A stretch of DNA of 64,000 bases, from the NCBI GenBank assembly GCA_907165135.1, contig OU015568.1, positions 15,263,208 through 15,327,207 of the forward strand, given 5' to 3'. Positions within the stretch are counted from its first letter, which is position 1. Every line of letters begins with the position of its first letter. The notes beneath the pieces were generated by a model, which saw nothing but the letters and a program-made list of their open reading frames with translations, made no database searches and was not told where the DNA came from. Positions 29,401-64,000 of the stretch are shown here, in pieces. A program made the translations under genes and the position numbers. This DNA comes from Oikopleura dioica. Its lineage: Eukaryota > Animalia > Chordata.

Positions 29401-29665
29401 GATCTCTTTGTTCCAGACGAGACGATAAATCATTAAAATCGTCTCTTTTCATCTAATTGCATTATTTTTTAAACATAATAACTTATAGGACGCCAAATGA
29501 TTGGGAAAACTTGCGCTTGAAGAGAATATCTATAAGACAAACAGATTCCGAAAAAATGAGAGATGGCAACCCTCTCTTAGAAGGCGCGGAAGAGATGATT
29601 TCCTGCTTTCGCAAACGCCTCTTTCGATGGAAAAGAGACATTTTACAAATAGTTAAGACTGTTAA

Positions 29666-29911
29666 ATGAACCCTAGATACAACCACGTATTGAGGATACT
29701 CATGAACGAAAACTTCAGCGAATATGGATCAAGACTGTTAATCCGATTTGCCGACGGAACGTTTTCTGAATGTTTCACCTCAACACTCGGGACCGACTTC
29801 AAAATTAAAAGTTATGAGCTTAGTGGGAAAATATTTAAACTTCTGATAACAGACTCTAAAGTCGGGAGTAACGATCAGTTCCTTGAAAAAAATCTCGACT
29901 TGGGACAATAA
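29666..29911 (+). CDS. Truncated Rab1-like protein (81 aa) with degenerate P-loop
   Basis: MNPRY...LLIRFADGTFSECFTSTLGTDFKIKSYELSGKIFKLLI aligns with Rab1 MNPEY...[38 protein letters not shown]. GxxxxGKS and DTAGQ are lost. Confidence 0.8.
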   Translation: MNPRYNHVLRILMNENFSEYGSRLLIRFADGTFSECFTSTLGTDFKIKSYELSGKIFKLLITDSKVGSNDQFLEKNLDLGQ

Positions 29912-30645: not shown

Positions 30646-30837
30646 ATGGGGAATATTATTCGCATCATTCATACAATCATTGAAGCCCTCACGATAGTCG
30701 TTAGACCAATAAGAAGTGGAAACGAGGAGCACGAAAAAATCGCTGAAGCAACAATAAAAGATGAAACTGACACGAAGGCAAAACCAAAGTCTGACAAAAA
30801 GCCATCAACCCAAGCCAAGCCCTATAAAAAGGGATAA
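30646..30837 (+). CDS. Small cargo ORF (63 aa) starting MGN, amphipathic N-terminus; overlaps capsid paralog
   Basis: Acceptor ttctttcag 14 nt upstream; Gly2. Confidence 0.45.
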   Translation: MGNIIRIIHTIIEALTIVVRPIRSGNEEHEKIAEATIKDETDTKAKPKSDKKPSTQAKPYKKG

Positions 30838-31519
30838 CGAACCAGACTTGGGGGAAATCAGCAACGGAAGGAGAAAACACTGGCAAAAAGAGGACAAATT
30901 CACAAAAATAATAAATAAAGAAAAGGAAAATAGACGAAACGACATCCAAAGAATAATTGATAAACACCTCGGCGAAAATCAGTTCAGAGCATGGAAATCG
31001 GACGAAAAAATATCATTCTGCGAGCACTTGTGCCGAAACGCAAACGCAATTTGCTTTGCCCGAAACTGTGGCCTCTCAGACAAACAATTGGTTACTTTAT
31101 TTATGCTGACCCTACGCAAAGAGGATATGTACATCGAACAACTGCTTGAAGCGGAGGATTTGCACGACTTCGGTCGTTGCCTGAAAAAGATAGGAAAGTA
31201 TCTGGGGGAAAGGGATGTCATGACAGATGAAATCTTCAACGTAAGAAGAAAGCCAGAAGAGTCGCTCCTGACATTCTTTAAACGCCTCACCCTGGTATAC
31301 GAAGCCTCTTCTAGGCATAGCTTGAAGTCCGATCAAACAGCAGCGTTTCTTTACCCATTAGTAAAAAACAATGCTACAAGAACTCAAAAGATTGAGCTTA
31401 GCAGAGTGCTAGAGGTCAACGGAAAGTACAAAAATGCGATTACCTACGCACGCTTGGAATCCGCGATAAAAGTAGCCCAAATAATGGACGACTCAGTCTT
31501 CAATCCGGACCAAGCTTAA
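30761..31519 (+). CDS. Stand-alone capsid (Gag CA) paralog 1, 252 aa
   Basis: Colinear with Gag CA: GLSDKQLVTLFMLTLR vs GLTDSQMVSLFMLTLR; RRKPEESLLTFFKRL vs KRRPQESLLAFFIRL; PLVKNNAT vs PVIKNNAT; AQIMDDS in both. Confidence 0.9.
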   Translation: MKLTRRQNQSLTKSHQPKPSPIKRDNEPDLGEISNGRRKHWQKEDKFTKIINKEKENRRNDIQRIIDKHLGENQFRAWKSDEKISFCEHLCRNANAICFARNCGLSDKQLVTLFMLTLRKEDMYIEQLLEAEDLHDFGRCLKKIGKYLGERDVMTDEIFNVRRKPEESLLTFFKRLTLVYEASSRHSLKSDQTAAFLYPLVKNNATRTQKIELSRVLEVNGKYKNAITYARLESAIKVAQIMDDSVFNPDQA

Positions 31520-34116: not shown

Positions 34117-34336
34117 GAAGGTAAACACCAGGCACTAGGAAACGACTAACACTAATTCAAGGGCAAAATTCAATCATACATGAAGAAAGAAGCAGTGAAA
34201 AGAGAAAGTCATAAGTACTATTTTCTGACCAAACATAAATCCAATTTTCGACGTGAACTGTAACTAAAAACTAGAAAAATCGTTAACTTAGCATTGAATT
34301 CAACAAGGAAAATTTAGACTGAAAATCAATAAAACC

Positions 34337-34912
34337 ATGTCTCAAAAGGAAAGTCGGCTCGCAAGCGTAGAAGACCTCCTTAACGGAACAGTAAGAAGCC
34401 CAATCCAGTTGTCGCTTTTCAAGGAAACACTGGCCCGGGCAATACTCAAAAAGCCGCAACAGCGATGCAATGACGTGAACGAAGAATGGCTCAGCCCCTT
34501 CTGTGAAGCAGTGAACACTGTAATACGAGCCTCCGAATATTGGCTTGCGGCGCAAACAACGGCAACAAGAATGCGAATTGCAGGAATGCACCATCATCAG
34601 TTAGCCCGCAGAAACTTAGGGTCAACCGAAGACTTAGTATACTTCATTGCCTTTCGAAACATCCAACGATGGCTACAGATTGCGGACCAAGGGTAGGAGC
34701 AAAGAACGGATAATATTCAACCCATAAGAATTTTAAGCTATGACTACTGGTTGATTCTCGAAATCTGGGGATTCTCTTTCAACGAACCCGAAGTGGCGCG
34801 ATGCTTCTACCTGGATGTTCAGGGCTGGACACCGACTCTTCCATCAATCATTCAATATGGCTACCAATGCGCGGCAAAAACGTCACCAATGGGAGACTTC
34901 CGGTTTTTCTAG
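34337..34912 (+). CDS. Element cargo family X, copy 1 (2 exons; intron 34693-34737; 176 aa)
   Basis: Splicing the 45-bp GT-AG intron gives GYDYWLILEIWGFSFNEPEVARCFYLDV, which aligns with intronless paralog 45547 (GFDRAIIKEIGSINVQEPAVAKEFARDV). Confidence 0.8.
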
Positions 34913-35206
34913 GCAATGCTCAAAAGAAGAAATGCGGAACAGCATCAAGCAACGTACTAATTACGTTAACTTAAACAACAGCTGTATGCCACTTATTAAC
35001 AAAATTGATAGTAGTAGAATTGATCTGTGTTATACTTACCCTTCGTACTTATCGATCATCAATTCGAACCAAACTCTGTATCCTACTGTCCGCCATTGTT
35101 ATAACAGTATTTTTTTAAATCCGTAAAAGACTTAATTATGGTCATCGAAGGAAAATTTCAAGAAAGTGAGTAACTATTTTGGTTCAGACAAACGCATAAA
35201 ACAACC

Positions 35207-37057
35207 ATGACAAAACTTATCAAATCAACCAAACAACAAGCTGACTTGTGCAAAGGAGGAACTATCCTCCTGGTCACCAGCACCGATCTCAGCGGGGCAC
35301 TCGCTGCGGCGGTAAAAACCGCAAAGATCGAAGGCAGCTTCCTACTGGCAACATACGAGGAGTCAATCTTTGCCCAGAAATTCGCTAACAGCGCATTACA
35401 ATGGGCAAAGATGAAACAAGCTGCAGAGGAGATATTGGGAGAAAGCCCAAACACTCTGATCTATTTGGACGACTCCCTGGCCCAGCGGCACGGAACCCAA
35501 ATCCCAAGTTCTTCAAAAACTGAACCTGTGCAACAAGTAAAAAGAGAGCCGGGAAAAGGCGAGAGTATCACAGAAGGAGGTCTGGAGGCGAAACCAGACG
35601 TACCGAACGAGCAAGAGACTGAACAAGTCAAAGAGCTCAGGCGACAGATTGAGCGGCTTCGCTTAGAAAATAGCTTGAAGACCGAGAATCTATCAAAAGC
35701 GCTAAGTAAGGTGGGGGCCATAGAAGAGGAACGGAAGGCAAACTGCGAAATGCTTAACCGATACGACGAGATACACAAAGAAATGATCGCAAAAATGGAT
35801 AACGCATCGGAAATCCTCGACAAGGCCAACCATCTTTTTGGTAATCGTAAGCGAGATCACGACAGTAACACCTCAGAAACAGACTCCGAGGAAGAAGATT
35901 GGGACGAACAAAGAGAGAAAGAAGCAGAGGAGCGAAATGCAAGGAAAAGAACGAGCGAACAACGTCAAAAGAAGAGAGGCCGAGAAGAGAATCCCAGTCC
36001 CTCTCGGAGGGAAAGCTCAACAGAGACAACAAGAAAAGAAAAACTGAGCGAGAAAAAGAAGCCAAAGAAGGATGGAGTGGTCCGATTCGTTGGAAACCCA
36101 CAGAAATTCCAATTGAAAAATTGGAAGACGGAAGAGAATATCACCTATTGGGAGCACCTTACAAGGAATAAAATTGCTCTCAACAACGCAAAGCAGAGCG
36201 GGTTAACAGACAGTCAGATGGTGTCACTCTTTATGTTAACCCTCCGCCCCGAAGACGCCTTCATTGAAGAATTGCTGGAAGAATCCTGGAAGAATAATTT
36301 TGAGCTATTTCTGGAAAAAATTGGGAAATTTCTGGCAGGAAGTCAGAGTAGCATGATGAACGATGTATTGACCGCCAAGCGACGGCCTCAGGAATCTCTT
36401 CTTGCATTCTTTATACGGCTTTGCACCATGTTTAAAACATCCTCGGGAAAAGACCCTAAGTCCCAAGAGGCAGCAATGGTGCTTCACCCAGTCATCAAAA
36501 ACAACGCCACTAAAATCCAAAAAACGGAACTAATCCGAGAACTGGAAGCCGGGAAGGCGGCTGACACACCAATAACGTTTGATAAGCTTCAAGCGGCGAT
36601 CAAACAAGCACAAATCATGGATGATTCAAACTTCCATGACGCTCCCGCAGAGCTTGTCTACAACATGGAAGGGGACAAAAGAACGAACACCCAAGAAAAC
36701 CAAGCATGGTCCAACAAGGGGAAAGGGATATCCGAAGCACCCAAGGTTAGCTGGAAGGAGAAAACAAGTGATGAATGGAACAGGGGACCCGCCACCCGGC
36801 CGAACGCAAATCGACCCCCATGGAACCGACAAGAGCGCTTCAGTCGGGGACGAGAACCTTATCCCCGAAGAACTGGACCACGTGAACCCTTATGTTTCAA
36901 CTGCAATGGGCGAGGCCATATGTGGCGCCAATGCAGCAAACCACTCAAAGACCGATTCGTGCGGGCACAAGCACAAGACAAAGCACGAGAGACGCGGGCG
37001 CGAGAGACAAAGACTCCGCCCGGGACAACAACTGCTAAGCCAAAAACCTCGGGCTAA
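35207..37057 (+). CDS. gag: Gag (616 aa): N-terminal extension, coiled coil, capsid, CCHC nucleocapsid
   Basis: Zinc knuckle CFNCNGRGHMWRQC; lies immediately upstream of pol. Confidence 0.92.
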   Translation: MTKLIKSTKQQADLCKGGTILLVTSTDLSGALAAAVKTAKIEGSFLLATYEESIFAQKFANSALQWAKMKQAAEEILGESPNTLIYLDDSLAQRHGTQIPSSSKTEPVQQVKREPGKGESITEGGLEAKPDVPNEQETEQVKELRRQIERLRLENSLKTENLSKALSKVGAIEEERKANCEMLNRYDEIHKEMIAKMDNASEILDKANHLFGNRKRDHDSNTSETDSEEEDWDEQREKEAEERNARKRTSEQRQKKRGREENPSPSRRESSTETTRKEKLSEKKKPKKDGVVRFVGNPQKFQLKNWKTEENITYWEHLTRNKIALNNAKQSGLTDSQMVSLFMLTLRPEDAFIEELLEESWKNNFELFLEKIGKFLAGSQSSMMNDVLTAKRRPQESLLAFFIRLCTMFKTSSGKDPKSQEAAMVLHPVIKNNATKIQKTELIRELEAGKAADTPITFDKLQAAIKQAQIMDDSNFHDAPAELVYNMEGDKRTNTQENQAWSNKGKGISEAPKVSWKEKTSDEWNRGPATRPNANRPPWNRQERFSRGREPYPRRTGPREPLCFNCNGRGHMWRQCSKPLKDRFVRAQAQDKARETRARETKTPPGTTTAKPKTSG

Positions 37058-37067
37058 GGCCCAGGTT

Positions 37068-40000
37068 ATGAACGTCAGACGAGGACGGCCGGATCACTGT
37101 ACAACTCTCCTCGTACGAACTGACGTAAAATTACGATCCGAGCGACGGTATCCAGTAGTGGTCAAAAACATTCTCACTCTCTTGGATACCGGCGCGAGCC
37201 TCAGCTGTGCCAGCCTTGATTTCGCGAAAAATCTGGAGGCACAGGGGTTCCCACTCAATAAGGAGAAGCCTATCCGTAGCAACCCGATGGCAGCGAAAGG
37301 GGCGCGAATGGAAATAGCATTCGACCTTGTATTGGATATAATCTTGCGAGGAGATCCTGATATCAGATTCCCTGGAACTCGCATAAGCATCATCCCGGGT
37401 CTAAGAGCTGAGCTCATTCTCGGAGTGGACAGTTTGCTTAACAAGACCATCCAATTGCAGAGAAGGACCGTTAAAATAAATGGGCAGACTTTCCCGCTTG
37501 CCTGCCCGGAAAACACCGTCCTACTGCGCGTTATCGAAGCCGGAAAGGGACAGGGAATGAATTTCCTGCGGGTTGATACAGGCCCACGAAAAGTGCACAA
37601 GGCATCAAAGCGACTTCTCCTTACATTGGATCCTGAATTTTCGCCCGGAGTCCCAGGAGTGGCTATGATTATCAACTCAAGCGAGTTGGAAACTGAGTTG
37701 ATGATCACGTACCCGGGTCCTGCGACTCCCGTCCCTAAGATATTCCTGGCCAGAATTGACGAGGTACAGGATGACCCTAATGAAGACTCACCGAAGAAAC
37801 TCACTCTCCAAGACATCGAGAAAATGACATCGAAAACAGAGCTTAGCGAAGATGGAATCGAGCGATTGAAGGAAATTCTAAAACAACATTCTGAAGCATT
37901 CTCGAAAGAAAAGACAGACGTTGGACTATATCAAGGACCGGAAGTCAAGCTCCAGCTTCTCGACCCCAGGCTCCCTGGAGCATGGGTTCGGCCAAGAAGA
38001 ATACCTTTCAGCCAAGTGGAATGGTTGAAAGCTGAGCTAAAGAAGATGGAAGAGGCGGGGATCATCGAAAGATCTACCGGAAGTAGCTTCAACGCGCCAC
38101 TCCAACTGGTAAAGAAGGCGAGCGGGGGCTATCGCATCTGCGTTGACATGAGAGCTCTTAACAACAGGCTCGCTGAAAGCAAATGGCCCCTTCCGTCCCT
38201 TGCCGAGACGTTGGAAAGCTTGTCGGGGTCTGCCTTCTTCTCCTGCGTGGATATAAGACAAGCCTTTTTCCATATGGCGCTGGAAGAAGAAAGCAAGCCG
38301 CTTACTGCGTTCTCAGCTCTCAATTCGCAATACCAGTTCAGACGGTTACCCATGGGTCTCAAGATCTCGCCGAGCGTCTACCAAATGGCAATGAAAGCCA
38401 CTCTGGGAGACGATCTGGGTAACCGTGTGGTCGCCTATCTTGACGACGTCCTCGTGTGTGGGAAAAACGAAGAAGAGCACCTCCAGACACTCGACCTCGT
38501 CCTTGCGAGACTTAAGAAAGCGGGGTTCCTGTTGAATCCAGACAAGTGCATCCTTGGAGCAAAGAAGATAACGTTTTTGGGGCACGAAGTAACACCAAGC
38601 GGCTATTTTCCAAAGACAGACAATCTTGCGGCCATACGAGAGTTTCCAGTACCGACCAACAAGAAGGCGCTTCGAAGGTTTATCGGGATGTGTTCGTTTT
38701 ACAGCACACTCGTTCCTAATCTTCAACGAAAACTAGCCCCGCTTCATGAAATCAGCGGGCCAAAAGCAACCTTCAATTGGACAAGCTCGCAAGAAGACGC
38801 GTTTCACCTCATCAAAAGGCTTATGGTGGCTCAAACTGGGCTAGCCTTTCCATCGAATGACCCAAAAGCTGTCTTGTTAGTCACATCAGACGCCAGTGAA
38901 ACGGGTTTCGGCGGAATGATAAGTCAGAAAATAGGAGATGAGGAAGAACAGCCCTTGGGCTACACTAGCGGATTCTTTCGAGGTCCTCAAGTGCGGTGGG
39001 CCATAAACGAAAAGGAACTTTATGCTTTCATTAAAACTCTTGAAACATTCCATCACTTCGTTTATGGGAGATCATTCCGATGGCGGACGGACAGTAAATG
39101 CCTGTCTTTCATTTGCGCGGAAACAAATGGCAAGCAAACCAGAAGACCATCTGCCAAGAAACTCCGCTGGCTGGAAAAATTAACAGAATACGATTTTAGC
39201 ATCACTCACTGCGAAGGGACAAGCCTCGAAATGAGTGTCGCTGACTGTCTTTCCCGGATTGATCCCCCAAACTTGGTAATGCACATCGACTCGGAAATTC
39301 AGAAGAAGTATAGGATGCTGAACCGACCAATCCCGACCTGGATAAAACTTAAAGGAATCACGAAGTCTGAGCTTCGCTTGGCCCAGGACAACGATGGAGA
39401 CTTGGTCAATTTTCGTAATGGATGGAAACCGCTGAAAGCCAAATATAGACTCAAGGAGCGAAGCGATGGAATACTTGTTTATGATCACAAGGATAAACCC
39501 CGGATTCCAATCCCGCAAGAACTCCAAGACAGGATTATATTAAGCTTTCACCTCCCACACCACGGAAGAACAACCAACCTGGTCCACGCGATGAGGGACG
39601 CGGATATCATCTTCCCAAAAATGGCAAAGAAGATAAAAACCAAGGTACAAACGTGCCCAGCGTGCCTCGCAACCGGAACGACCGAGAACCCAAAGCATCG
39701 ACAAGTGACGGCGCCAAAAGAGATGCATCCGAACATGACCGTAACCATCGACCTTTTGGGTCCTTTACCGACAAGTCCAACTAGAAAGAAGTATATCCTC
39801 GCGGCCGTAGACAATCTCACTCGTTGGATTGAGTTGAGGTGCATAGTCGACAAGACAGCCGAGCACGTTGCAAAAGCCCTTCTCGATATATTTTTTCTAA
39901 GAGGCCCCCCAAGGGCCGTATCTTGTGATTTCGGTCGAGAATTTAACAACGTGCTCTTAACAGAACTATTAACATCGTTCGGCACAGCAGTCAACCATGG

Positions 40001-40607
40001 CACCCCTTACCGACCACAAGGACAAGGACTCATTGAACGAGCAAATCGCGAGATTCTTAAACACCTAAAATCGCTCGACATCGACGAACACCGATGGGAC
40101 ACTTACATTCCATCTATACAGTTATCGATGAATTTAACTTACCACTCGGCACTCGGAACGAGTCCCTTCCAAGCAATGCACGGATGGCTGCTCGCCGAGC
40201 CACTTTTCTCAAGACAAATCAACGGAGAAGAGCTCCCTCGGAACGTCAGACTCTGGGTCAAAGAGTCAAGTTCCCGAATGTGCGCAGCCTTATCACTGTT
40301 AACAGCGAGACAAGCTGTGCCTCTCATGGAACTACCGGACGAAAATCAACCCGATGGACTTGAAAAGGGGACCCCCGTCCTTCTGAAAAAAATGAAGCCT
40401 CCAGGAGTGAGCTCCAAATTATTTAACGCCTGGAAGGATGGCTTCGTCGTGAGAAAACGACTTGATCATAATACTTATTTAGTTACTCCCGTCGAATCTC
40501 CTAGGCGGCGCTTCCTAGTCCATCGCTCCCGTATACGGCGATTGGGCAGGCCTCTTGAGGAAGCACCACCGGAAAAACACGTATATACGGTAATCAGTCG
40601 AGAATAA
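37068..40607 (+). CDS. pol: Pol polyprotein PR-RT-RNaseH-IN (Ty3/gypsy order); possibly extended to 40818 by a 43-bp intron
   Basis: LLDTGAS (protease), VDMRALN and YLDD (RT), TSDAS/EKEL/TDS/ADCLSR (RNase H), H-x-x-H-H...CPAC, D-D-E (IDLLGP, SCDFG, LIERAN) and GPY/F-like WKDGFVV. The ORF is uninterrupted. Confidence 0.97.
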   Translation: MNVRRGRPDHCTTLLVRTDVKLRSERRYPVVVKNILTLLDTGASLSCASLDFAKNLEAQGFPLNKEKPIRSNPMAAKGARMEIAFDLVLDIILRGDPDIRFPGTRISIIPGLRAELILGVDSLLNKTIQLQRRTVKINGQTFPLACPENTVLLRVIEAGKGQGMNFLRVDTGPRKVHKASKRLLLTLDPEFSPGVPGVAMIINSSELETELMITYPGPATPVPKIFLARIDEVQDDPNEDSPKKLTLQDIEKMTSKTELSEDGIERLKEILKQHSEAFSKEKTDVGLYQGPEVKLQLLDPRLPGAWVRPRRIPFSQVEWLKAELKKMEEAGIIERSTGSSFNAPLQLVKKASGGYRICVDMRALNNRLAESKWPLPSLAETLESLSGSAFFSCVDIRQAFFHMALEEESKPLTAFSALNSQYQFRRLPMGLKISPSVYQMAMKATLGDDLGNRVVAYLDDVLVCGKNEEEHLQTLDLVLARLKKAGFLLNPDKCILGAKKITFLGHEVTPSGYFPKTDNLAAIREFPVPTNKKALRRFIGMCSFYSTLVPNLQRKLAPLHEISGPKATFNWTSSQEDAFHLIKRLMVAQTGLAFPSNDPKAVLLVTSDASETGFGGMISQKIGDEEEQPLGYTSGFFRGPQVRWAINEKELYAFIKTLETFHHFVYGRSFRWRTDSKCLSFICAETNGKQTRRPSAKKLRWLEKLTEYDFSITHCEGTSLEMSVADCLSRIDPPNLVMHIDSEIQKKYRMLNRPIPTWIKLKGITKSELRLAQDNDGDLVNFRNGWKPLKAKYRLKERSDGILVYDHKDKPRIPIPQELQDRIILSFHLPHHGRTTNLVHAMRDADIIFPKMAKKIKTKVQTCPACLATGTTENPKHRQVTAPKEMHPNMTVTIDLLGPLPTSPTRKKYILAAVDNLTRWIELRCIVDKTAEHVAKALLDIFFLRGPPRAVSCDFGREFNNVLLTELLTSFGTAVNHGTPYRPQGQGLIERANREILKHLKSLDIDEHRWDTYIPSIQLSMNLTYHSALGTSPFQAMHGWLLAEPLFSRQINGEELPRNVRLWVKESSSRMCAALSLLTARQAVPLMELPDENQPDGLEKGTPVLLKKMKPPGVSSKLFNAWKDGFVVRKRLDHNTYLVTPVESPRRRFLVHRSRIRRLGRPLEEAPPEKHVYTVISRE

Positions 40608-44953: not shown

Positions 44954-45487
44954 ATGCGGTACAGATGCGCTTATTGCAACACTCAATGGGCGTCCATAAA
45001 TTTCGAAGACGGCTGTAGAAATTGCAATAGCGATTTCATCGAAATAATCAATGATCGAGCCAGCACACGAGATTCAAATACAAACTGGACCACCCTGGGA
45101 CAAATCAAGTGGACTCTGACGATAGAGAAAAGGCACTGGGAGAAGCTTAAGTCCTTAAACACCGACCTGGTAAAGAGCAAACAGAAAAAATAGAGCGGCT
45201 TAATGAATCACGTATTTAAGATGATGCGATTCCGCATTCCGACGCCCTCCTCGCCCAAAGAGAAGCTAAGAACCGAAAAGGAAGGCGGTAAGGACTTTCC
45301 CGTGGACAAGCAACGCCAAAAGGAAGTGGACATCTGCGCAATATGCCAGGAAGGACTCTTCAACAACCTTGCTTGCCTACGTTGTAATCATGTTTTTCAT
45401 CAAGGTTGTATTCGCAAGTGGTTAAACCAACCACGCTGCTCGCGCTGTCCGTACTGCAACCAAACAGTCCCACTGCGTTTCTTCTAA
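44954..45487 (+). CDS. RNF126/RNF115-like E3 ligase A: Zn ribbon + RING-H2 (intron 45170-45220; 160 aa)
   Basis: YRCAYC...CRNCNSDFIEII (cf. CPRCESGFIEEL); CAIC...CNHVFHQGC..W...CPYC. A 51-bp GT-AG intron joins them in frame. Confidence 0.75.
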
Positions 45488-45546
45488 CCACGAATTATAA
45501 GAAGCTAAAGAGCAAATTGAGTAATTGTTCCTTCTTTTAAGAACAA

Positions 45547-46104
45547 ATGGAACAGGCAAAAATTGACAATATTATCATTGGAACAGCGGAAGACGCGATC
45601 AAGCTTTCCTCCTTCCAAGAAATTATCGTACGAGAAATCCTGGGGAAACCGAAGTTGATTGGTTTCAATGCTGAAGAAGAATGGCAGCGTCCCCTGAGAG
45701 ACGCCGTTCATTTGGTAAACCAGAAAGCCGAACTATGGCTAAGATCCCAAACTTGGCAGGAACAAGCAACAATAGCGAAACTGCCGAGACAACGACTAGC
45801 GACAACAACTTTGTCTTCCACCAAGGACCTCGCACTGCTGATCGCATTCCGAACTATGCAAAGAAAGTTGAAAAGCCCTTGGCAAAAAGAAGGTTTTGAT
45901 CGCGCGATCATCAAAGAAATTGGGAGCATCAATGTTCAAGAACCAGCGGTCGCCAAGGAATTCGCTCGCGACGTAAACACGGGAATAGAATCGATTCCGG
46001 CAATCATCGAAGAGGCGTACACAAAAATAAAAAATGAAGAATCACTGGAAGATACCCGAAAAAAACCTGTTAAACCTGCATGTCTGACACTTTCCCAGCG
46101 ATAA
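45547..46104 (+). CDS. Element cargo family X, copy 2 (185 aa, intronless)
   Basis: IKLSSFQEIIVREILGKP / EEWQRPLRDAV / STKDLALLIAFRTMQR align with copy 1 (34337). Confidence 0.8.
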   Translation: MEQAKIDNIIIGTAEDAIKLSSFQEIIVREILGKPKLIGFNAEEEWQRPLRDAVHLVNQKAELWLRSQTWQEQATIAKLPRQRLATTTLSSTKDLALLIAFRTMQRKLKSPWQKEGFDRAIIKEIGSINVQEPAVAKEFARDVNTGIESIPAIIEEAYTKIKNEESLEDTRKKPVKPACLTLSQR

Positions 46105-47038: not shown

Positions 47039-47700
47039 ATGAGCTCCCCAAGAGATTCGAACCTAGCTCCAAAAACCGAGCCGGAAATAAAGGTAAATAA
47101 ACAAAATGATAAGAGCTAATCTTCCCTAAGGAGGAATCCGTTCATCTCGAGCTACTCAAATCCTACAAGCACCTCCTTCCGAACCAAATCTACAATTATG
47201 CCAAACTTGTCGTTAAACGAGTAATGACAACTGACCCAAAGCTTTCCCCAAAAGGCATCGTGACCAGCGCAGTTTATTTGGCGTACAAATTTTCGCCAGA
47301 GCCAAAAACAACAACAGCCATCGGAGAAATGCTGAAATGCCCAAATTGGATGATTTACAAAACCGCACCGTTAGTACGGACACGATTCAACAAGGAGACC
47401 AAAAACGAGCTAGAGATTGCAAGAAAATACATCGATCAACAAGCTCATCTCGCTGATTCGGATTGGATCACTCGGGCAAGACAAATAGCCGACCATGCCT
47501 GGCACCCCAACATCAAAGCGAGCCCGAAAAGAATTGCTGCATCATCCGCGTACTTAGCATACAAATTTTCGCCAACACCAATGTCGGCGAGGAAAGTAGC
47601 ACAGCAATGGAACTTCTCCACAGCGCAAATTCTGGCAACAGCCCAAACCATTCAGAAGCATCTCAAAATAGTCTGTTTTATTACCGCCCGGCGGGAGTAG
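47039..47700 (+). CDS. TFIIB-core-like (two cyclin-fold repeats, no Zn ribbon); intron 47093-47130; 207 aa
   Basis: Repeats GIVTSAVYLAYKF and RIAASSAYLAYKF. A 38-bp intron (GTAAAT...gctaat...ccctaag) supplies an in-frame ATG exon. Confidence 0.7.
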
Positions 47701-47749: not shown

Positions 47750-48524
47750 ATGGCTAGCTTTCGCTGCTTAGGTTGTAACCTGAATTGCGAGGAGATTCGA
47801 AAACCCTGGAATTGCCCGAATTGCAACAGTAAGTTCATCGATCTAATAGGAAAATGGAAAAAAGAAGACGTGGTAGACAAGACCGGTTACAACAATGGAG
47901 AGATTCTCTTCAAAATCGTTGCAAACCACGAGAGGGCAATCAGCCAAATCAAACACTTGATGGAACTTAGTAACTGTCGAACCTCTGCACATGTAAGTGC
48001 CCTAGATGGTTGGGAAAAAGTAAAAAATTAATCAGGGTGAAACAAATGAAAACGCCCAAACACCGGGGCCTACTCCATCAACGGAACCACCGAAAGACCC
48101 AACAGGCAGAAAGACGTCCGGGCTTTTAGAAGAAAAGAACAGTTTCAAAAAGGCACCGACTTCTGTTAACCTTGAAGGACGGAATCAATTGAAAATGAGA
48201 CCACAGCCAAGGGTAGGAGAAATAGAAGGTATTCGGGGACAGTGCCAAGGAAGATACCTCATACCAAATGGGAAGCGTAGACATAAACAAAAAACAATTG
48301 AAGAAATTGGGACTCGCGAATATGAAAGACGCGAGGACACACTTCGACATTCCACCATGCATGAGACTCTTGAATACCCTTGCGGCATCTGCATGGAAGA
48401 ATTCGCGGCCAAGTGCTGTTCATTCCTCCCCTCGTGCGGGCACACTTTCCACACTCACTGCATCCTAAAATGGCTTCTCCACAAAAATACCTGTCCAATT
48501 TGCCAGGAAATCATAGCAAAATAA
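47750..48524 (+). CDS. RNF126/RNF115-like E3 ligase B: Zn ribbon + RING-H2 (intron 47993-48035; 243 aa)
   Basis: FRCLGC...CPNCNSKFIDLI; CGIC...CGHTFHTHC..W...CPIC. A 43-bp GTAAGT...CAG intron joins them in frame. Confidence 0.8.
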
Positions 48525-48576
48525 AATAATAATAAGAAAAAGATAACTCTGACACTCTTAACTTACCCTGTTAAGT

Positions 48577-49421
48577 ATGGACGAGAACCAAGAGGAAGCA
48601 GCACAAACTGAAAACGAAGAATCACCGCATAATTCAAGGCAGAAGGAACAAACACTGCCATGTTTCTTGGAAGAAATAATGACACCACCGAAGAAAATAG
48701 GGCGCCTAGAAGTAATCAACCCAGATGGAACAAGAACTTTGCAACAATTCGTTGAAGGAGGAGCCACGTGCGAGGAACTGCAAGCACTCTTAGACTCACT
48801 TTCACGCATTGAATTGACAGAATGGGAAAAAGAGGTAGGCGACCCCTGCCGCATTTGCCTGGAAGAATTTGACAAAACAGCAAACCTTATACCCACCTGT
48901 GGACACTTCTTTCACCAACATTGTCTACGAAACTGGCTCATATGGAAGGATTCTTGCCCACTATGCATCTTACCGGTAAACGAGAACAGATTGAACATGA
49001 CCCGAAAATACTTTAGGTTAAGCCGAAAGGAACCATCCCAATAACAATTAAGGATTGGCTGGAAAAGAAACATAAAGTTAAGTACGAATCGTTGCTCGAT
49101 GCGGTAAATATACTTGAAAAGAAGGAAGAATATGACAACATCAACTCACATTTCCGCCTCGAACCGGACGGATCGCTCATTGAAATAAAAATCATCTTCA
49201 GGAAAGTCGAAGGCGAAGAATTGGAGGAAAGGCTCATGCTGACAAAGAAAATCAAGATAAGCGCAGTAGAAAAGTACGAAAGTGATTGCGGGCTCTGCCA
49301 GGAAGACCTGCCTGAAGACATATCGGTCATGACATGCTGTTACGCCTACTACCATAATGCGTGCCTGCGAAAATGGCTAGCAAACAGACCTTACTGCAAG
49401 TACTGCAACACCCCCCTATAA
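48577..49421 (+). CDS. Tandem double-RING protein (intron 48976-49016; 267 aa)
   Basis: RING-H2 CRIC...CGHFFHQHC..W...CPLC and a second RING CGLC...CCYAYYHNAC..W...CKYC. A 41-bp GT-AG intron joins the ORFs in frame. Confidence 0.75.
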
Positions 49422-49481
49422 GATTGAAGTTGCAACAGATTCAGAAACCACCTAAATTAAAATATACCAAAGGATAGCACT

Positions 49482-50351
49482 ATGATGTTTAGAATGCTCT
49501 CCACAAACACATTTCAGCTCTACGTATGGCTTCCTACCGAAAACATTTTTTTCGAGAACCATGTCTCGAGGAACCAACAAGGATTCCGGGACGCACGGAA
49601 AGCAGGGCTCTCCGACGAACAATTGACAAGTCTCTTTCTCATAACACTGACACCAGAACAAAGGAGTTACGAGACTCTCCTCGACGAAATTGAGAAAACA
49701 AATTTTGATCTATGCGTAGATCGGATGAGGAAGATTCTTACCACGAACCTGGTATACGATCGAGACTTGCCATACCTCGACGCCAAGGAAAAATTCCGGC
49801 TCTATGTATGGGGACCAAACGAAAAAATCAGCTTCGCACAACATGTGGCAAGAAACAGACAAGGGTTCAACAGCGCAAGAAAATGTGGGCTTCTAGATGT
49901 TGATCTCACTCGTCTTTTGTTTATGACTCTCAGACCAGAGTTTGCACACCTCGAGAAAGGCCTAAATAGGAATGAAAAAACCAAACTCGAGCTTTGCATC
50001 GAGAGAATGAAGAAATGTATTTCAGCGAAACATCAAAACCATAATAAGGGGAATGAAGTAAACGGAAAACGCAAAGAAGGCGAAGCCCTGATCATTTTCT
50101 TCGGACGACTCTGCGCAGATCTGCAAAAGTCACCTGGCGAAGAACCACTATCAGACGCCGCGGCCCTCAGAATAATTTACCCTATTCTCCTACAGAACTG
50201 TGGCCCTGCCGAGTTCCATACCCTTGTCAAATATAAGAGCAGCGACGGAACCCAAGATTTAACCTTCAGAGCGCTTGCAGCTAAACTAGGGAACCTGCAC
50301 GTACCCTACGGTGGCATACAAACAAGACCAAGACGCGCTATTAATCGCTAG
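49482..50351 (+). CDS. Capsid paralog 2 with tandem-duplicated CA N-terminal module (289 aa)
   Basis: FQLYVW..ENI.F..HV.RN.QGF..ARK.GL.D..LT.L...TL.PE occurs twice and matches Gag FQLKNWKTEENITYWEHLTRN...GLTDSQMVSLFMLTLRPE; then RKEGEALIIFFGRL. Confidence 0.85.
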   Translation: MMFRMLSTNTFQLYVWLPTENIFFENHVSRNQQGFRDARKAGLSDEQLTSLFLITLTPEQRSYETLLDEIEKTNFDLCVDRMRKILTTNLVYDRDLPYLDAKEKFRLYVWGPNEKISFAQHVARNRQGFNSARKCGLLDVDLTRLLFMTLRPEFAHLEKGLNRNEKTKLELCIERMKKCISAKHQNHNKGNEVNGKRKEGEALIIFFGRLCADLQKSPGEEPLSDAAALRIIYPILLQNCGPAEFHTLVKYKSSDGTQDLTFRALAAKLGNLHVPYGGIQTRPRRAINR

Positions 50352-50703: not shown

Positions 50704-51675
50704 ATGGATAAACATAAAATTATCGGAGAAAAGGCAAGTGGGCTGCTTTCTGGGCTCAATGATTTGCTCCCACACCTCGGTCCCCTCGGTAAAGTCTGGT
50801 ACGCAACTTTGCTGGTAAGAAGTATTGTCCTATTAACAGTTGGTACGGAAATTTATTCAAACGATTCAGGCGGATTCAGATGTAGCACCAAACAGCAACT
50901 GTGTAGCTCAGTTTGCTATAACCAATTTTTACCAGTCAACCTGACTAGATTTTGGACTTGGCACCTCGTCATTATTGGGATCGTCACTCTGGGGCTCGGA
51001 CATCTTATCCTGAAACCCGCAGAAGACGTACAGCTTATGCGATTACTCGAACACGACATAAACCCAAAACCGACAGAATTAATCGTCTGGCCAAATCGCC
51101 AGGACCGGCCAAGCTGGACATTTCAACTGAAGAGGCTTAATGAACTCCGCTCAAAATATGGGCATATGCAAGGCTTCAAAGAAAAATACAAAGGTAATCG
51201 CCTGGTCATCACGACACCATCAACGAACTGGAAACGAATCTTGTTCCTAACCAGTCTGTGCGTCATTGACCTTATTTTTCTAATTATGAATTTTGTGCTC
51301 CTCAAACACCAATACAACCACGAAACACCTTGGACGACCCTCCTTAAGGCAGGACAACTGTTGAAGACCCCAGCTTCATTTATCTGCAAAATTGATAAAT
51401 ACGCGATACTATCAGAAAAAGAGACGAGGAATTTCGCGGAAACTGGATATGATCCTGCTGACCCGCGTTACTTCTTCTGGAAAGCACAGCACGCATGTGC
51501 CCAATCCGAGTCCGTCTGTACTGTCGACAAATTCACGGAAAAAACGTTTATCTCCTGTACCATGATCGGTGCAACCCTAGCGGGCACTCTATTGCTAGCA
51601 ACAGGCGGACTGTTTTACCTGATTAAAATAATTCATAGAATTCTGTCAAGACAATGGAAAATCAGGCGGACGTAA
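50704..51675 (+). CDS. Connexin (gap-junction/hemichannel protein), intronless, 323 aa
   Basis: GKVW TM1; EL1 FRCST.Q..CSSVCYN...P....RFW; EL2 C...C...C with FTEKT; four TM segments; very short C-tail. Confidence 0.92.
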   Translation: MDKHKIIGEKASGLLSGLNDLLPHLGPLGKVWYATLLVRSIVLLTVGTEIYSNDSGGFRCSTKQQLCSSVCYNQFLPVNLTRFWTWHLVIIGIVTLGLGHLILKPAEDVQLMRLLEHDINPKPTELIVWPNRQDRPSWTFQLKRLNELRSKYGHMQGFKEKYKGNRLVITTPSTNWKRILFLTSLCVIDLIFLIMNFVLLKHQYNHETPWTTLLKAGQLLKTPASFICKIDKYAILSEKETRNFAETGYDPADPRYFFWKAQHACAQSESVCTVDKFTEKTFISCTMIGATLAGTLLLATGGLFYLIKIIHRILSRQWKIRRT

Positions 51676-51712: not shown

Positions 51713-52622
51713 ATGTCTGCTCCAGGCTGCTCTCTTCCCGCCTTTACCTGCTCATATCATGGCCCAAAGCACATAGCCGACGAAAGGCTTGTGACAGGAG
51801 ACCTTATCTGCAAAATATGCGGACTTGTCGTAGGAGAAAGATGCCCACCACTCAACCCAGAAAAATCAATGCGAGTGACGGCCATCAAACCAAACGAAAA
51901 CTTGCCAAAAACTTTCACCCGGAATAACGAAGAAACAGGGGACGAATGCATCATATCAAACGAGGCCCAACTATCCAACCGCGAGAAAAATAGGTTACAA
52001 ACTGTCCTTCGGGAATGTGAAGACCTCATCGAAGAAGCAGGAGCCCGATTGATATACTCAGGACTCACTAATACAAAACTACGAGCTTACGAACTCATCA
52101 AAAAGCTATACCTCAAAGAAAAACAGGGAACAACTTGGTACTTCCACCGCCAAAATCGCGCAGAACCCGTGGCAATAGCGGCGTGCCTCTACCTGGCCAG
52201 TAAGCAAGAGAACTGCGACCTGAGCTTGGAAGAAATCTGCCAGGCAACTGGCACCTCTCCCCCTAATCACCCAGAGAATGATTCGCAAATTCGATACCTT
52301 CCTCAGAACAGCAAAAATCGACGCACACATTAAAAACAGAATCAAACCTTACATCCAAAGAATAGCAGCTGCGCTTCGATTAACTAATCACCAAGCGAAA
52401 GAAATCGAAGCGCATGCCATCCTGATAAGCAAAGAAACCCCATCAGCCACAACCTCAGCAAAAACGCTCGCCGCCGCCAGCACCTACGTATATATCGACC
52501 GAATAAACCGACCAAAGTCAGTCAAGGAAATAGCAAGACTTGTGAACGCGGGAACCCGGCGGCTTCAAATCTACATCGCAGAACTCCCTCGAACACTCGG
52601 AGGAAGAAGAGAAAGGGAATAG
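51713..52622 (+). CDS. TFIIB homolog (Zn ribbon + core), split by a 1-nt frameshift in a C-run near 52258
   Basis: CSYH...GDLICKICGLVVGER Zn ribbon; AIAACLYLAS...SLEEI and TLAAASTYV...KSVKEIA cyclin repeats. Deleting one C joins the two ORFs. Confidence 0.88.
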
Positions 52623-52858
52623 AAGGAAAAGGTGATTACTATATAAACGCGATGGCGCTACAAAACCAACACTAACCAATTACGTAGTTAATCCCGCTCG
52701 ATCCTGACAAACAACAACTTAAACACCCAGAATATAGTAGCTGCCACCCATTTATGTCTGTACCCATTATTTCGAACTTCAAACAAAATCTTTATGCCTT
52801 ATGAATAGCGCTCACTCCTTTAAAATAGGCCACTTTCATCCAACATCCGATTTTTAGT

Positions 52859-53479
52859 ATGTCAATCCTTAAAGAAATCCAAACGATCCAAGCCGCGTCA
52901 AACCGACGAATTGTAAAAACGCTGCTCCTCCCAAGAATGGTCGGAATCGAAATACCCATTGGAACCATGACCCTTCGTGATGAGCAGCCCGTCCAAGCCA
53001 TGTACGATTTTATCGATAAAGTCACCGCTTCCGCCATCACCTACCGGTCCATCCCGAACTTAAACTCTGACGCTTTCCTGGACGCCTTTCTGAATCAAAT
53101 CCCAAGACAAGAAACCGAGCAATGCGTTCTACTTTGGATCGCAAAAACCATCATCGTCGCCCATATGACCTTCCATGAAACCAGAGACCGACTGATCGCA
53201 TACCTCACGGATGCTTTCCAAACCAAGTATGGTCGACGTCAGATCCCATTTCGACCAATAGCATTGCCAAGAAACGAACTCCAAGACAAACTCCAAGCGA
53301 TCGAAATCCGCGTTAAAGCGGTCGCTTCTACTATCATCCTCGCCAAACGCGTGGTCAAACCCGGCTTGCCAAAAATGGAGCCAACTCCGGCTAGAAAAGG
53401 GACCAGACAACGAATGCGAAAAATCCAACGTAACAGACGAAAGTGGTCGGCATCGAGCACCAAATCCAATGAGGCTTAA
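52859..53479 (+). CDS. Last cargo gene (206 aa): candidate Rev/Rex-like RNA export adaptor (NES + Arg-rich motif)
   Basis: ELQDKLQAIEI fits the CRM1 NES spacing phi-x3-phi-x2-phi-x-phi; RKGTRQRMRKIQRNRRKW resembles the lentiviral Rev ARM. The function is inferred. Confidence 0.55.
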   Translation: MSILKEIQTIQAASNRRIVKTLLLPRMVGIEIPIGTMTLRDEQPVQAMYDFIDKVTASAITYRSIPNLNSDAFLDAFLNQIPRQETEQCVLLWIAKTIIVAHMTFHETRDRLIAYLTDAFQTKYGRRQIPFRPIALPRNELQDKLQAIEIRVKAVASTIILAKRVVKPGLPKMEPTPARKGTRQRMRKIQRNRRKWSASSTKSNEA

Positions 53480-53532: not shown

Positions 53533-53545
53533 AAGGAGGGTAAAG
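53533..53545 (+). other. Polypurine tract
   Basis: AAGGAGGGTAAAG directly abutting the 3' LTR. Confidence 0.8.
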
Positions 53546-53852
53546 TGTTATGATATAACTTATGTTTATGCAGCTGAGTGCCCAGGTTAGCCTGAGCATC
53601 TCGTTCCATCCTGACGATATGCCTCGTGCATAATTGATCAACCAATAAGAACCTGGATGGCTCGGGATGCAGCGTAGGATAGCCTGGGGGCTCAGCGATC
53701 AGTATATAAGGAAGACACCTTCCTTCAGATCAGTAACGTTCTCATTTCATACCATGTGCAAGACATGAAATAAAACACAAAATACGTTATACCAAAATAT
53801 GCGTTAGTTTTTATTGCAAGATTGATACACCATTGCAAGGCAGCGCATAACA
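53546..53852 (+). repeat. 3' LTR (307 bp)
   Basis: Direct repeat of 16491-16797; followed by TSD CCGT. Confidence 0.97.
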
Positions 53853-53856
53853 CCGT

Positions 53857-54735
53857 GCGTTGCGAACTGCCGGCCACCAACAGGACATTCTGCTCGAGCT
53901 TGGTATTGAACTTGGCAGTCGACCAACGCTAGCACAGCGCGCGGGCCTCATAAAATCAAAACCGAAAAAATGGACAGAGAGCGATTGGAAATCCCTCGAA
54001 ACATCCCTCTTGCAGAAACGCGCCTTTAGAGACATTTGTTCTATCTGCCTCAACCGACATGGGAAGCATCCGATTGCTATGACCACCTGTGCGCATGTTT
54101 TTCACCAAAGTTGCTTGAAAGCGACGAGGCAATCGAAAACTTTTCACAAATGTCCGCTTTGTCGGTAATGCCAAATTATACTTTCCAATAATTTATGCAA
54201 CTTTAGTGAAGAATATAAAGAAAAAGTCACGAAACGCGGTCTCCGAGCGAGCCAGAACTACGCGGCAGCTCAAATCCAAGCTTGTGTTCGATCGTTTATG
54301 ACGAGGCGACGTCTGGTCAAGAATTTTTCCTCCCGTCCGAACGTCAAAGCTCTCAAGTCCGAGTACGAGTCGTTTATTCTACGGAATTGGTCGAAAGAGG
54401 CCATTTCTTCTACTTCGACGATGATTTCCGAAACGGACAAGCTACTTGAAGCGTCTGAAGATGCACTCGCCGCCTCGAGGAGGATCTTTTCGCAGATCAA
54501 GCTAGCGCCAGAAAAGGAGAGCGAAGAATTCCAAGCGGCGGCAGAACGCTGTGTTCAAGATCGCTCCTGCTCAGTTTGTCTTTGTCCGTTCAAGGGAAAA
54601 ACAGTTGCACTTCTTTCTTGCTCGCACGTGATTCACGACACTTGTAGAATTCAGCTCGAGTCTTTTTCGGGCAAAACGTTGTGTCCAGTTTGCAGACAAT
54701 CGTATTCTTTCAAAGCTTCTGATCTTATGTCCTGA
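53857..54735 (+). CDS. RNF32: RING-IQ-RING protein RNF32, disrupted: first codons ATG AAC CGT lie at 16482-16490
   Basis: PTLAQRAGLI...W, RING, IQ motif AAAQIQACVRSFMTRRRL, second RING. The empty-site join gives MNRALRTAGH in frame. Confidence 0.85.
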
Positions 54736-60200: not shown

Positions 60201-63200
60201 GCGACTTCTAATTCTAGCATAAAATTTGGTTAGGTAAAAGTGACTTAATTCTCAAGTTAAAATCCTTGACAGTGCGTTAAATTGTTTCGCGATCGTCCTC
60301 GAATACTGCAAGCTTGGAAGTCTATCTTCTTGGTTGAACGAGTGTGCTAGAGAGCAGCGCGCCGTTCCCCTTTATTCCGCCGTTAAAATCGCCAAAGATA
60401 TTGCATCAGTTACGGGATATATTCACGATCGGACTCTGAGAGTCCGATAAACCTAGACCAAGTCACGCTTTTTAAGAGAAAATATCAACGCTGCTAAAAA
60501 TGACCAAAGGTGTTCCCTCTGGTGTGAATAATTAGTCCGAACTATGGCTGCCCGAACTTCTAAAAAAGACGCACTATAAATGCCATGGCATTGCAATTTG
60601 CCATTGACACCTTAAAGTTTTAAAGGCTTAAACCGTGTCTTCACTTTCAAATTCAGTCAAAAAGAGAAAGTATATCAATAAAAAGCTCTGGAATTTCTGC
60701 ATGAGCCGAGTCGAGAATCTGGACTTTATGTTCGGATTCCTGTTGCTCACAGCTAGGGTGATCAAAAGTGAGTATATTTATAAAGTCCAATATATAATCT
60801 GAAACTGCTTTGATCCAAATTTACCAACTTTTCGTGTTTCTCGTATAAAATTGCCCACCCGTAATGATCAGAGACGTCAAATCAACTAATATACTTCTAC
60901 GAAGCAATACTCACGCACTCTTGTCAGACTTTGGTCTTGCAATAAGTCTCGGTAATCTATTAACTGCGGTGCAAACATGTTTCATACGGAATTAAGAGTC
61001 GCTTGTGGGCACGGCGGAGAAAGTTGACAAAGAAAATACACAGGTTCGTCCTCCCTCCTTTCTGATAAGAAAGACTATTTTGATTTTAGCCGGACATTGA
61101 CTACTACAGGATCAAGCAATGTGGAACTCCAAGGAATGTGGTTAGAAAGAAGGACAGAATCTGACGGTTTATTTCAAACAAAATTCAAGGGGAATATTAT
61201 TAGTGACAACTTTTTTAAACCTTGGTTTGTGAGCTGACATCAATTTGCGAATGTCATTAAATTCTCGCCATAAATCAGGCGGCAATTATTTTTCGTTAAG
61301 CGACCGTAAAAATTAACAGGCATCAAAATTCACGTCAAATTCAAGTCTGACGATTCGCTTTTTCAAAGTCAAGTTCGTTCACTTTTCTCTCTTAAAAGGT
61401 CTCCCAGTTAAAACATCTTGCGGCATTCTTACAATACCGGTTAATTGGATTTCGCGGGTCAAGTCGATAATTTGAAGAAACGATATAAAACTGTGAAAAG
61501 CGTTAGCATTGGACGGAAAAAATCCAAATTTAAAAATCTTTTTTGGAATTTCATTTTTATTGTTTCCATCAAATTCTCCATATTCGAAAACCTAGAAAAA
61601 AATTATTTGTTTAGACAGGAGGCCTTCTAAATATTTTTAATATTCATCTAAAAGTGCAAAAATGCCCTTCAGGAAAAGCTTCTTTTGAAAGGGTTCCGGT
61701 AATTTTCTTTTGATTTCTTTCCTCGACCATCTAGAGACAGGTCTCGGACAGTTCGGTTAGCAAAAAAATAAATAATACTTATTGTCTTCATGCTCAAAAT
61801 ATGCATTAAATAACGTGTTAATGACCAAAAACACCGAAAACGTGAAAAAACGCTGAACGATCAATGATCGTCATTCTATTTAGCGAAAAAGTCGAATAAG
61901 TCAAAGGCAAGATATTTCAAAATAATTGCCTATCGAAATATATAAATGTATATTATTCATTAAGAGCTATTTTGTCAATTCACAGAGATGCGACTATTTG
62001 GCTATTTTTCAATCAACTTAATAATCTCAGAGGCTACGAAACGCAAAACGACCAATTTTTAACGACATTGTTATTTTTGAATGCTTAAAAATAACCATTC
62101 ATTGTACGGATAGTCGAAATCTTGGGGCCTCAATCTCATTTTCTCAAACTTGTTCAAATACAGTCACTTATCATGTCTGCAAAATTTCATGCGATTTGAA
62201 ACGCAGCGCGACCATTTTTAGTATAATTTATTATAAAGCTTTAAATAGCTCTAGAATCTGAGTTTTCGGGCCTCCAAGCTGATTGCTCTTGACCAAACTT
62301 TGGTATATGTAAACTACATTTATGCAAAATTTCATAAAATTTGAGACGCAGCGCGACCCTTTTTGTCCAAATTATATCGAAATTCTATAAAAATAGCAAT
62401 TTATTAGTTGGTTTTGGCTCTAGAATCCAAGTTTCGAGAGCCTCCAACCTAATTCTTCTCAAGCAGGGTAAGAAGACTATATTCTATCTGACTGCCTAAT
62501 TTCAATCAAATCGAGACGCAGCGCGACCATTTTTTACGAAAAATGATAATAATAACCACTTATTAGTAAGTTTTGGATCAAGAATCCAAGTTCCAATGGC
62601 CTCCAGCCCAATTTTTCTCATGCGAGTTTCAGCGGGTGCTTTTTATCAACCTACCAAAAATCAATCGATTTGAAGCGCAGCGCGGTCATTTTAAGACAAT
62701 TTATTACTAATAAGTGGTTATTATTATCATTTTTCGTAAAAATGGTCGCGCTGCGTCTCGATTTGATTGAAATTAGGCAGTCAGATAGAATATAGTCTTC
62801 TTACCCTGCTTGAGAAGAATTAGGTTGGAGGCTCTCGAAACTTGGATTCTAGAGCCAAAACCAACTAATAAATTGCTATTTTTATAGAATTTCGATATAA
62901 TTTGGACAAAAAGGTCGCGCTGCGTCTCAAATTTTATGAAATTTTGCATAAATGTAGTTTACATATACCAAAGTTTGGTCAAGAGCAATCAGCTTGGAGG
63001 CCCGAAAACTCAGATTCTAGAGCTATTTAAAGCTTTATAATAAATTATACTAAAAATGGTCGCGCTGCGTTTCAAATCGCATGAAATTTTGCAGACATGA
63101 TAAGTGACTGTATTTGAACAAGTTTGAGAAAATGAGATTGAGGCCCCAAGATTTCGACTATCCGTACAATGAATGGTTATTTTTAAGCATTCAAAAATAA

Positions 63201-64000
63201 CAATGTCGTTAAAAAATTGGTCGTTTTGCGTTTCGTAGCCTCTGAGATTATTAAGTTGATTGAAAAATAGCCAAATAGTCGCATCTCTGTGAATTGACAA
63301 AATAGCTCTTAATGAATAATATACATTTATATATTTCGATAGGCAATTATTTTGAAATATCTTGCCTTTGACTTATTCGACTTTTTCGCTAAATAGAATG
63401 ACGATCATTGATCGTTCAGCGTTTTTTCACGTTTTTCGGTGTTTTTGGTCATTAACACGTTATTTAATGCATATTTTGAGCATGAAGACAATAAGTATTA
63501 TTTATTTTTTTTGCTAACCGAACTGTCCGAGACCTGTCTCTAGATGGTCGAGGAAAGAAATCAAAAGAAAAATTACCGGAACCCTTTCAAAAGAAGCTTT
63601 TCCTGAAGGGCATTTTTGCACTTTTAGATGAATATTAAAAAATATTTAGAAGGCCTCCTGTCTAAACAAATAATTTTTTTCTAGGTTTTCGAATATGGAG
63701 AATTTGATGGAAACAATAAAAATGAAATTCCAAAAAAGATTTTTAAATTTGGATTTTTCCGTCCATTTCTCTTGCCATTTTATCTCGGGATCTTATGGTC
63801 GGCCGAGCCCGCAAAACCTGGAAACCTAAACGTGAAAAATCTTTGACATATTCATTTTTAAAAAGCTGAGACTCTTTGGCCCCAACCTTTTACCACAGTT
63901 CGGCTGGACCTAAACTTGAACGCGTCTTCTTGTCGCAGATTTTCTAATCGTATCCAAAGATACCTTGCCCCTGAACTTTTAGAAGGACCGATGGATGTTT
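57275..64000 (+). CDS. TGF-beta/activin-family receptor Ser/Thr kinase (type II-like), multi-exon, runs off the window
   Basis: Ectodomain Cys box CCCTSPLCN, TM, GNGRYGTV (~58208), AMKIF and HPNIV (~59916-60032), LEFLHE...PVAH (~60690-60750), RYLAPELLEG (~63958-63987). Exon boundaries are not fully resolved. Confidence 0.72.
59561..59782. mobile_element. piggyBac-like MITE (222 bp) in a kinase intron
   Basis: TTAA|CCCCTGCCCGCATAT...ATATGCGGGCAGGGG|TTAA; ~32-bp TIRs, each including the 16-bp palindrome GACCTACGCGTAGGTC. Confidence 0.85.
61510..63765. mobile_element. Foldback-like long inverted repeat (~1.06-kb arms, ~135-bp spacer)
   Basis: Arms 61510-~62570 and ~62705-63765 are reverse complements except for homopolymer lengths; internal sub-repeats (g)acgcagcgcgacc. 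No clear TSD. Confidence 0.75.

Follow-up and report, generated by a model that had tools for sequence, protein, structure and literature searches.

How a retroelement RNA of 37 kb avoids being spliced, polyadenylated internally or retained in the nucleus is a genuine question, and it is raised by an LTR retroelement in the genome of Oikopleura dioica from Okinawa (assembly GCA_907165135.1; PMC11384887). The setting is unusual: the O. dioica genome, at 65-70 Mb among the smallest animal genomes (PMC8008620), hosts a 37-kb LTR element that is still moving whole. We analyzed the 64,000-nucleotide stretch of DNA that contains this element (contig OU015568.1, positions 15,263,208 to 15,327,207), called the window here, and all coordinates refer to positions within it unless another sequence is named. 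An earlier, sequence-only reading of the window had proposed that the last open reading frame (ORF) of the element encodes a Rev/Rex-like factor that exports unspliced RNA. This terminal ORF and a long hairpin in the U3 region of the LTR are reasonable places to look for an RNA-escape mechanism; considered alone, the ORF is another example of an orphan accessory gene in a complex retroelement. The explanation we favor, at roughly even odds (a probability of about 0.5), is that the ORF is a genuine accessory gene whose product, a basic, alpha-helical and soluble protein made from its own sub-genomic mRNA, would act as a nuclear regulator of element expression.

The window contains a complete LTR retroelement of 37,362 nt (16491-53852, + strand), bounded by a 4-bp target-site duplication, CCGT. 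Its two LTRs of 307 nt each (5' LTR, 16491-16797; 3' LTR, 53546-53852) have TG...CA ends and are 100% identical to each other, and the 3' LTR contains TATATAA at 53703 and AATAAA at 53769. A purine-rich polypurine tract (53533-53545) abuts the 3' LTR. The gag gene (35207-37057) encodes a CCHC zinc knuckle and the pol gene (36579-40607) encodes reverse transcriptase, RNase H and integrase in the Ty3/gypsy domain order. These features, all on the + strand, identify the element as Ty3/gypsy-type. No tRNA was found in a scan of the window, and the primer-binding site is without a tRNA match. A second full-length copy of 37,377 nt is located on chromosome 1 (OU015566.1, about 3697268-3734644) and has its own target duplication, AGAG. 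It is collinear with the window copy and 99.6-99.8% identical to it; compared with the window LTRs, its 3' LTR is an exact match and its 5' LTR differs by one mismatch. Two full-length copies with their own target duplications show that the 37-kb unit, together with its spacers and putative introns, transposes whole and is copied through RNA, which bears out the premise of the sequence-only reading. The element is a very large, very young and recently mobile LTR retroelement.

Comparison of the two copies over the 12.1 kb at the 3' end revealed 7 substitutions and 15 indel events. Twelve of the 15 indels fall in homopolymer runs, and 7 of 15 ORFs compared are affected by indels. The terminal ORF has 0 substitutions between the copies, which makes the copy comparison uninformative on selection, and in the chromosome 1 copy one single-base indel changes its frame. 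Because most of the indels are homopolymeric, the signature of residual nanopore error (assembly method, PMC8008620), this frame change may be a nanopore assembly error, and we give it no weight. The closest relatives of the pol product are metagenomic proteins that are 71-72% identical. One metagenomic relative (L001), with a pol that is 68% identical, is collinear with the element through gag, pol and the first post-pol ORFs. The post-pol ORFs of L001 are only 28-45% identical, and its contig stops 3.4 kb past pol, short of the region of the terminal ORF.

About 25 ORFs on the + strand of the element share a gag/pol-like coding signal, and several of them belong to recognizable families. A connexin-like accessory ORF (50704-51675, + strand) matches Pfam PF00029 with an E-value of 2.6e-18 (67 bits); a word-indexed single-sequence search returned no relative of this ORF, which is too diverged. 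Immediately upstream of the terminal ORF lies a TFIIB-like gene (51713-52622, + strand) with weak Pfam matches to the TFIIB zinc ribbon and cyclin repeat. It is split into two frames by one frame change in the window copy, the two genomic copies differ there by indels, and NCBI annotates a protein for its first ORF. A second TFIIB-like gene, likewise with weak zinc-ribbon and cyclin-repeat matches, is found at 47224-47700. Together with gag (here 35174-37054), two further ORFs (30758-31516 and 49461-50348) make up a set of three capsid-like paralogues, and the core of gag shares 47% and 30% identity with these two. A further duplicated pair is present at 34298-34693 and 45541-46101.

The terminal ORF is present as claimed, at 52859-53479 on the + strand, and is the last ORF ahead of the polypurine tract and 3' LTR. 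It runs from ATG to TAA and encodes a protein of 206 amino acids (23.7 kDa, pI 10.6). Shuffling the coding-dense 23.6 kb of the + strand 200 times never gave an open frame of at least 206 codons, with 0.014 expected. The codon-usage log-odds of the ORF are similar to those of gag and pol in its own frame only; its other frames and minus-strand ORFs are unlike them. By length and codon usage the ORF looks coding, and we take it to be, as part of the favored explanation, a genuine accessory gene, specific to this lineage, and the final cistron of the element. Gene models cover it in both genomic copies in the RNA-seq-guided annotation (PMC8008620). In the chromosome 1 copy the annotation consists of a 118-aa gene. 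In the window copy, residues 27-192 are fused to a RING gene past the 3' LTR (CAG5091025.1); this model joins 52937-53434 to about 53978 onward, and its predicted intron removes the 3' LTR. The fusion reflects either a transcript that reads through from the element and is spliced into a host gene, or an artefact of gene prediction; as a chimeric model it is uninformative on the biology of the element itself.

Two other assignments of the terminal ORF were considered and rejected. It is not part of the TFIIB-like gene, as it forms a separate ORF past a 236-nt spacer and is modelled separately in both copies. Env, with a signal peptide and a membrane anchor, is the usual last gene of Tor/errantivirus-type elements. 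An Env-like identity was rejected for the terminal ORF: the protein has no membrane segment (maximum 19-residue hydropathy 1.27), its N-terminus is hydrophilic and its pI is 10.6.

Searches for relatives of the 206-aa protein gave 0 families in Pfam (E up to 10), including no DNA-binding or activation domain, and 0 matches among PDB sequences (E up to 10). A word-indexed search of 5.8 billion clustered proteins and an exhaustive phmmer search of 1.84 billion representative proteins likewise gave 0 matches. ORFs and exons were searched as separate pieces, including those of the two-frame TFIIB-like gene and of annotated multi-exon models. The protein has no zinc knuckle and no similarity to gag or nucleocapsid proteins, tblastn found no paralogue of it within the window, and two metagenome scans, with the terminal ORF and the neighboring connexin-like ORF as queries, yielded no relatives of it. 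Fold searches with a predicted model of pLDDT 41 returned best E-values of 0.15 (viral proteins) and 0.95 (PDB) at TM scores of 0.27 or below, none of them Rev-like; owing to the low confidence of the query model these searches are not meaningful. Neither Rev, Rex nor any other family was returned by the Pfam, PDB-sequence or fold searches. The two annotated proteins of the ORF sit in a 90%-identity cluster that is held together by a chimeric 775-aa model and has a representative unrelated to the ORF, so representative-based searches cannot return the ORF's own annotated fragments. As no homologue was found, there is no sign of purifying selection on the ORF, which we count against the favored explanation.

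The terminal ORF encodes a protein with a basic C-terminal tail. Its last 31 residues (176-206; 53384-53476, + strand) are rich in Arg and Lys and carry a net charge of +10. The sequence-only reading had pointed within this tail to an Arg-rich motif close to that of HIV Rev. The cluster is indeed found at 53399-53446 (residues 181-196, GTRQRMRKIQRNRRKW, + strand), with 9 Arg/Lys in 16 residues. Equally basic clusters arise in 1.5% of shuffles and are seen in 3 of 72 open segments of the + strand and in one further ORF of the element, so that the cluster is real but only moderately unusual. The element is A-rich and most of its ORFs are basic, so that the basic character of the protein is partly compositional. 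The tail would suit a nuclear localization signal (NLS) or any nucleic-acid binder just as well.

The second motif of the proposed export factor, a CRM1-type nuclear export signal (NES), fares less well. ELQDKLQAIEI is present at 53276-53308 (residues 140-150, + strand) with class-1a spacing. Patterns of the NES type occur 14 times in the protein, and at least one is found in 99.7% of shuffles. Such a pattern is expected by chance and therefore carries almost no information. It sits at the start of a hydrophobic seam of 8 heptad a/d positions (residues 141-166; 53279-53356, + strand), a length reached by 8.6% of shuffles, and a packing or coiled-coil helix appears to be at least as good a fit to this segment as an exposed NES. 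AlphaFold prediction without an alignment gave an all-helical protein of seven helices at low confidence (pLDDT 41). The predicted helix at residues 138-164 is likewise of low confidence, with pLDDT values of about 30 around the NES-like pattern. The favored layout is a helical body followed by the amphipathic heptad helix (residues 141-166), with a proline-rich linker between this helix and the Arg/Lys-rich tail. The protein is probably soluble and all-helical, as far as this model indicates. The proposal of an export role for the ORF comes down to two short motifs of low information content.

The surroundings of the terminal ORF contain candidate signals for its separate expression. An acceptor-like TTTTTAG (52851-52857, + strand) ends 2 nt ahead of the ATG. 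TTTAG occurs within 10 nt of the ATG in 5 of 22 ORFs, compared with 2.65% of all ATGs (P about 2e-4), and the same TTTAG-ATG arrangement is found ahead of accessory ORFs in the metagenomic relative. In keeping with the premise of the sequence-only reading, acceptor-like sites are located directly ahead of several ORFs. In O. dioica a spliced leader is trans-spliced at AG acceptors, resolving polycistronic RNA (PMC6883708). Upstream, the 236-nt spacer contains a candidate internal promoter, TATATAA (52640-52646, + strand), 219 nt before the ATG. It represents the sole + strand instance from 30 kb to the TATATAA of the LTR itself. The Tor elements of O. dioica express their last gene from a spliced form of the LTR transcript or from an internal promoter (PMC4402516). 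The mRNA of the terminal ORF would most likely be sub-genomic and started at this TATA-type promoter about 220 nt upstream; alternatively, it could be produced by splicing, in cis or by spliced-leader trans-splicing, at the acceptor-like site.

A long imperfect hairpin occupies U3 at 53573-53696 (16518-16641 in the 5' LTR; + strand), about 95 nt past the stop codon of the terminal ORF. In a scan of 160-nt windows it is the strongest predicted RNA structure of the element (z -8.7), the LTR as a whole scoring z -5.7, and the beginning of gag forms a second structural outlier (35211-35370, z -5.3). By its position, the hairpin is part of the 3' UTR in every transcript of the element. An Rfam scan of the window returned nothing, the U3 hairpin included. 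The acceptor-like site, the TATATAA and the hairpin appear compatible with a separately expressed regulator, the kind of which they leave unspecified. We infer the expression route, the nuclear localization and the nucleic-acid binding of the protein from this arrangement and from its composition: the Arg/Lys tail would most likely direct the protein to the nucleus or nucleolus, bind nucleic acid, or do both, and the protein would act in the nucleus to regulate expression of the element at the level of RNA export, transcription or packaging.

Known systems offer several points of comparison. In Rev-like regulators, an Arg-rich motif serves as RNA-binding site and NLS and an exposed leucine-rich NES recruits CRM1; these regulators possess a helical oligomerization fold, are made from a spliced sub-genomic mRNA and act on a structured cis response element. 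The terminal ORF resembles the genes of Rev, Rex, Rec and Rem in its location towards the 3' end of a retroelement, in its small basic product with both an Arg-rich cluster and a leucine-rich pattern, and in a candidate splice acceptor ahead of it; its element must likewise export a long RNA bearing splice signals. In contrast to these regulators, it has no sequence, profile or fold match, its NES pattern is not above chance and its host element is of the Ty3/gypsy type and not a retrovirus. Retroviruses also contain cis-acting 3' RNA export or processing elements, such as those of the constitutive transport element type and the Rex-responsive element located in the LTR. The long stable stem-loop in U3 of every element transcript is similar to these, but it has no Rfam match and could function at the DNA level as a promoter palindrome.

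A direct precedent for the proposed export role, encoded by an element of the Ty3/gypsy type, is CERV of Cer1 from C. elegans, which is required for genomic RNA export (PMC10309623). CERV is a lineage-restricted nuclear protein produced from a spliced mRNA and possesses a candidate NLS and NES; it consists of 517 amino acids in three domains, H, M and G, one of them G-protein-like, and shares 5' exons with gag (PMC10309623). The protein described here differs in its length of 206 amino acids, in being encoded by its own ORF at the 3' end, about 15.8 kb downstream of gag, and in giving no hit in the search of 1.84 billion representative proteins. CERV (PMC10309623) makes the gypsy export factor put forward in the sequence-only reading less novel than claimed; a positive answer on export, if true, would be the second independent case and not the first. 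By their published description (PMC4402516), the Tor elements share the host species and the pol type with this element, and the TATATAA and acceptor-like site upstream of the terminal ORF fit the two expression routes of Tor. Tor elements are described with env as the only gene beyond gag and pol (PMC4402516), whereas the present element is 37 kb long, contains about 25 ORFs and ends in an ORF that encodes neither a signal peptide nor a membrane segment.

Several functions other than the broad one we favor can be assigned to the terminal ORF. As a Rev/Rex- or CERV-like adaptor, the protein would bind structured element RNA through its basic tail, recruit CRM1 through its leucine-rich pattern and so export the unspliced 37-kb RNA. 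Both motifs are present, and the need is real for a 37-kb unit that is copied whole through RNA and bears numerous acceptor-like sites as well as 27 AATAAA hexamers on its coding strand. The acceptor-like site ahead of the ATG is what would be expected for the product of a spliced mRNA, the very stable U3 hairpin just downstream could serve as the response element and CERV provides the gypsy-type precedent (PMC10309623). However, the NES pattern is expected by chance and leads into a heptad seam of 8 positions, as is typical of helices that are buried or form coiled coils, and the protein shows no likeness to any Rev-like family or structure. The hairpin, present in all transcripts, could equally be a protein-independent export element, a polyadenylation element or a promoter element, and Tor elements show that splicing can be bypassed through internal promoters (PMC4402516). 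We consider this role quite unlikely. A more specific version, in which the ORF would be a second, independently evolved gypsy export adaptor, made from a cis- or trans-spliced mRNA, binding the U3 hairpin through its Arg-rich tail, multimerizing through the heptad helix, taking a 37-kb RNA rich in splice acceptors and poly(A) hexamers out of the nucleus of a chordate and bearing no sequence relation to Rev or CERV, seems very unlikely. A transcriptional regulator or cofactor with a Tat/Tas/Tax-like role, brought to the nucleus by the basic tail and acting at the LTR or at internal promoters together with both TFIIB-like proteins, is unlikely, if less so. The ORF lies directly downstream of one TFIIB-like gene and the element has another, the TATA boxes of the LTR and of the upstream spacer share their core, and the tail is accompanied by a possible dimerization helix. 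Against this role, the Pfam search (E up to 10) recognized no DNA-binding or activation domain, gene adjacency is weak evidence, and the searches gave no relatives of the ORF.

A structural or chaperone role, in which a small basic protein coats or condenses the long genomic RNA or cDNA in particles, would account for the high pI and the Arg/Lys tail. A 37-kb genome may need additional nucleic-acid chaperoning, and three capsid-like paralogues are present in the element. But the protein lacks a zinc knuckle and any likeness to gag or nucleocapsid, and the position of its ORF after regulatory-type genes is unlike that of a structural module. This role is the least probable of those considered here. 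The ORF could also be non-functional, its frame open through the youth of the insertion or left over from captured sequence. It is an orphan with no homologue, the copies are too young to reveal selection, its frame is changed in one copy and its annotation is inconsistent, with a 118-aa gene modelled in one copy and, in the other, a fusion to the host RING gene downstream. Yet an ORF of this length was not reached in any of the 200 shuffles, the gag/pol-like codon signal is frame-specific, the TTTAG context of the start site is common to other ORFs of the element and the frame change probably arose in assembly. We regard a non-functional ORF as improbable, on a par with the transcriptional role.

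Further features of the element and its surroundings were noted. RING-finger ORFs are present within the element at 45194-45484, 48024-48521, 48562-49041 and 49017-49418. They resemble the RING gene of the host flank (53851-54165 and 54169-54732), with 36-39% identity in the RING, and the window copy is inserted into or beside this host gene. A Ras-family exon upstream of gag (29666-29908) covers the P-loop to switch I (E 1.3e-5); its similarity in kind to the G-protein-like domain of CERV is noted as a coincidence only. The 13 kb from the 5' LTR to the first recognizable ORF (16798-29600) have a GC content of 0.34-0.39 and no Pfam domain on the + strand. This region contains a 41-nt tandem repeat (25061-25230) and annotated minus-strand genes at 25672-26175 and about 20767-21509. 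Near-perfect palindromes are located beside the 5' LTR (15712-16465, with 253-nt arms) and near the end of the window (61518-63758, 2.2 kb, nested), and neither has an Rfam or tRNA match. In the left flank, host genes encode a p53-like DNA-binding domain (696-1433), a glucosidase II beta-like protein (2825-4244), a cytosolic carboxypeptidase (6311-8325) and a cyclophilin (11560-12027), and these genes are closely spaced, as would be expected in this species.
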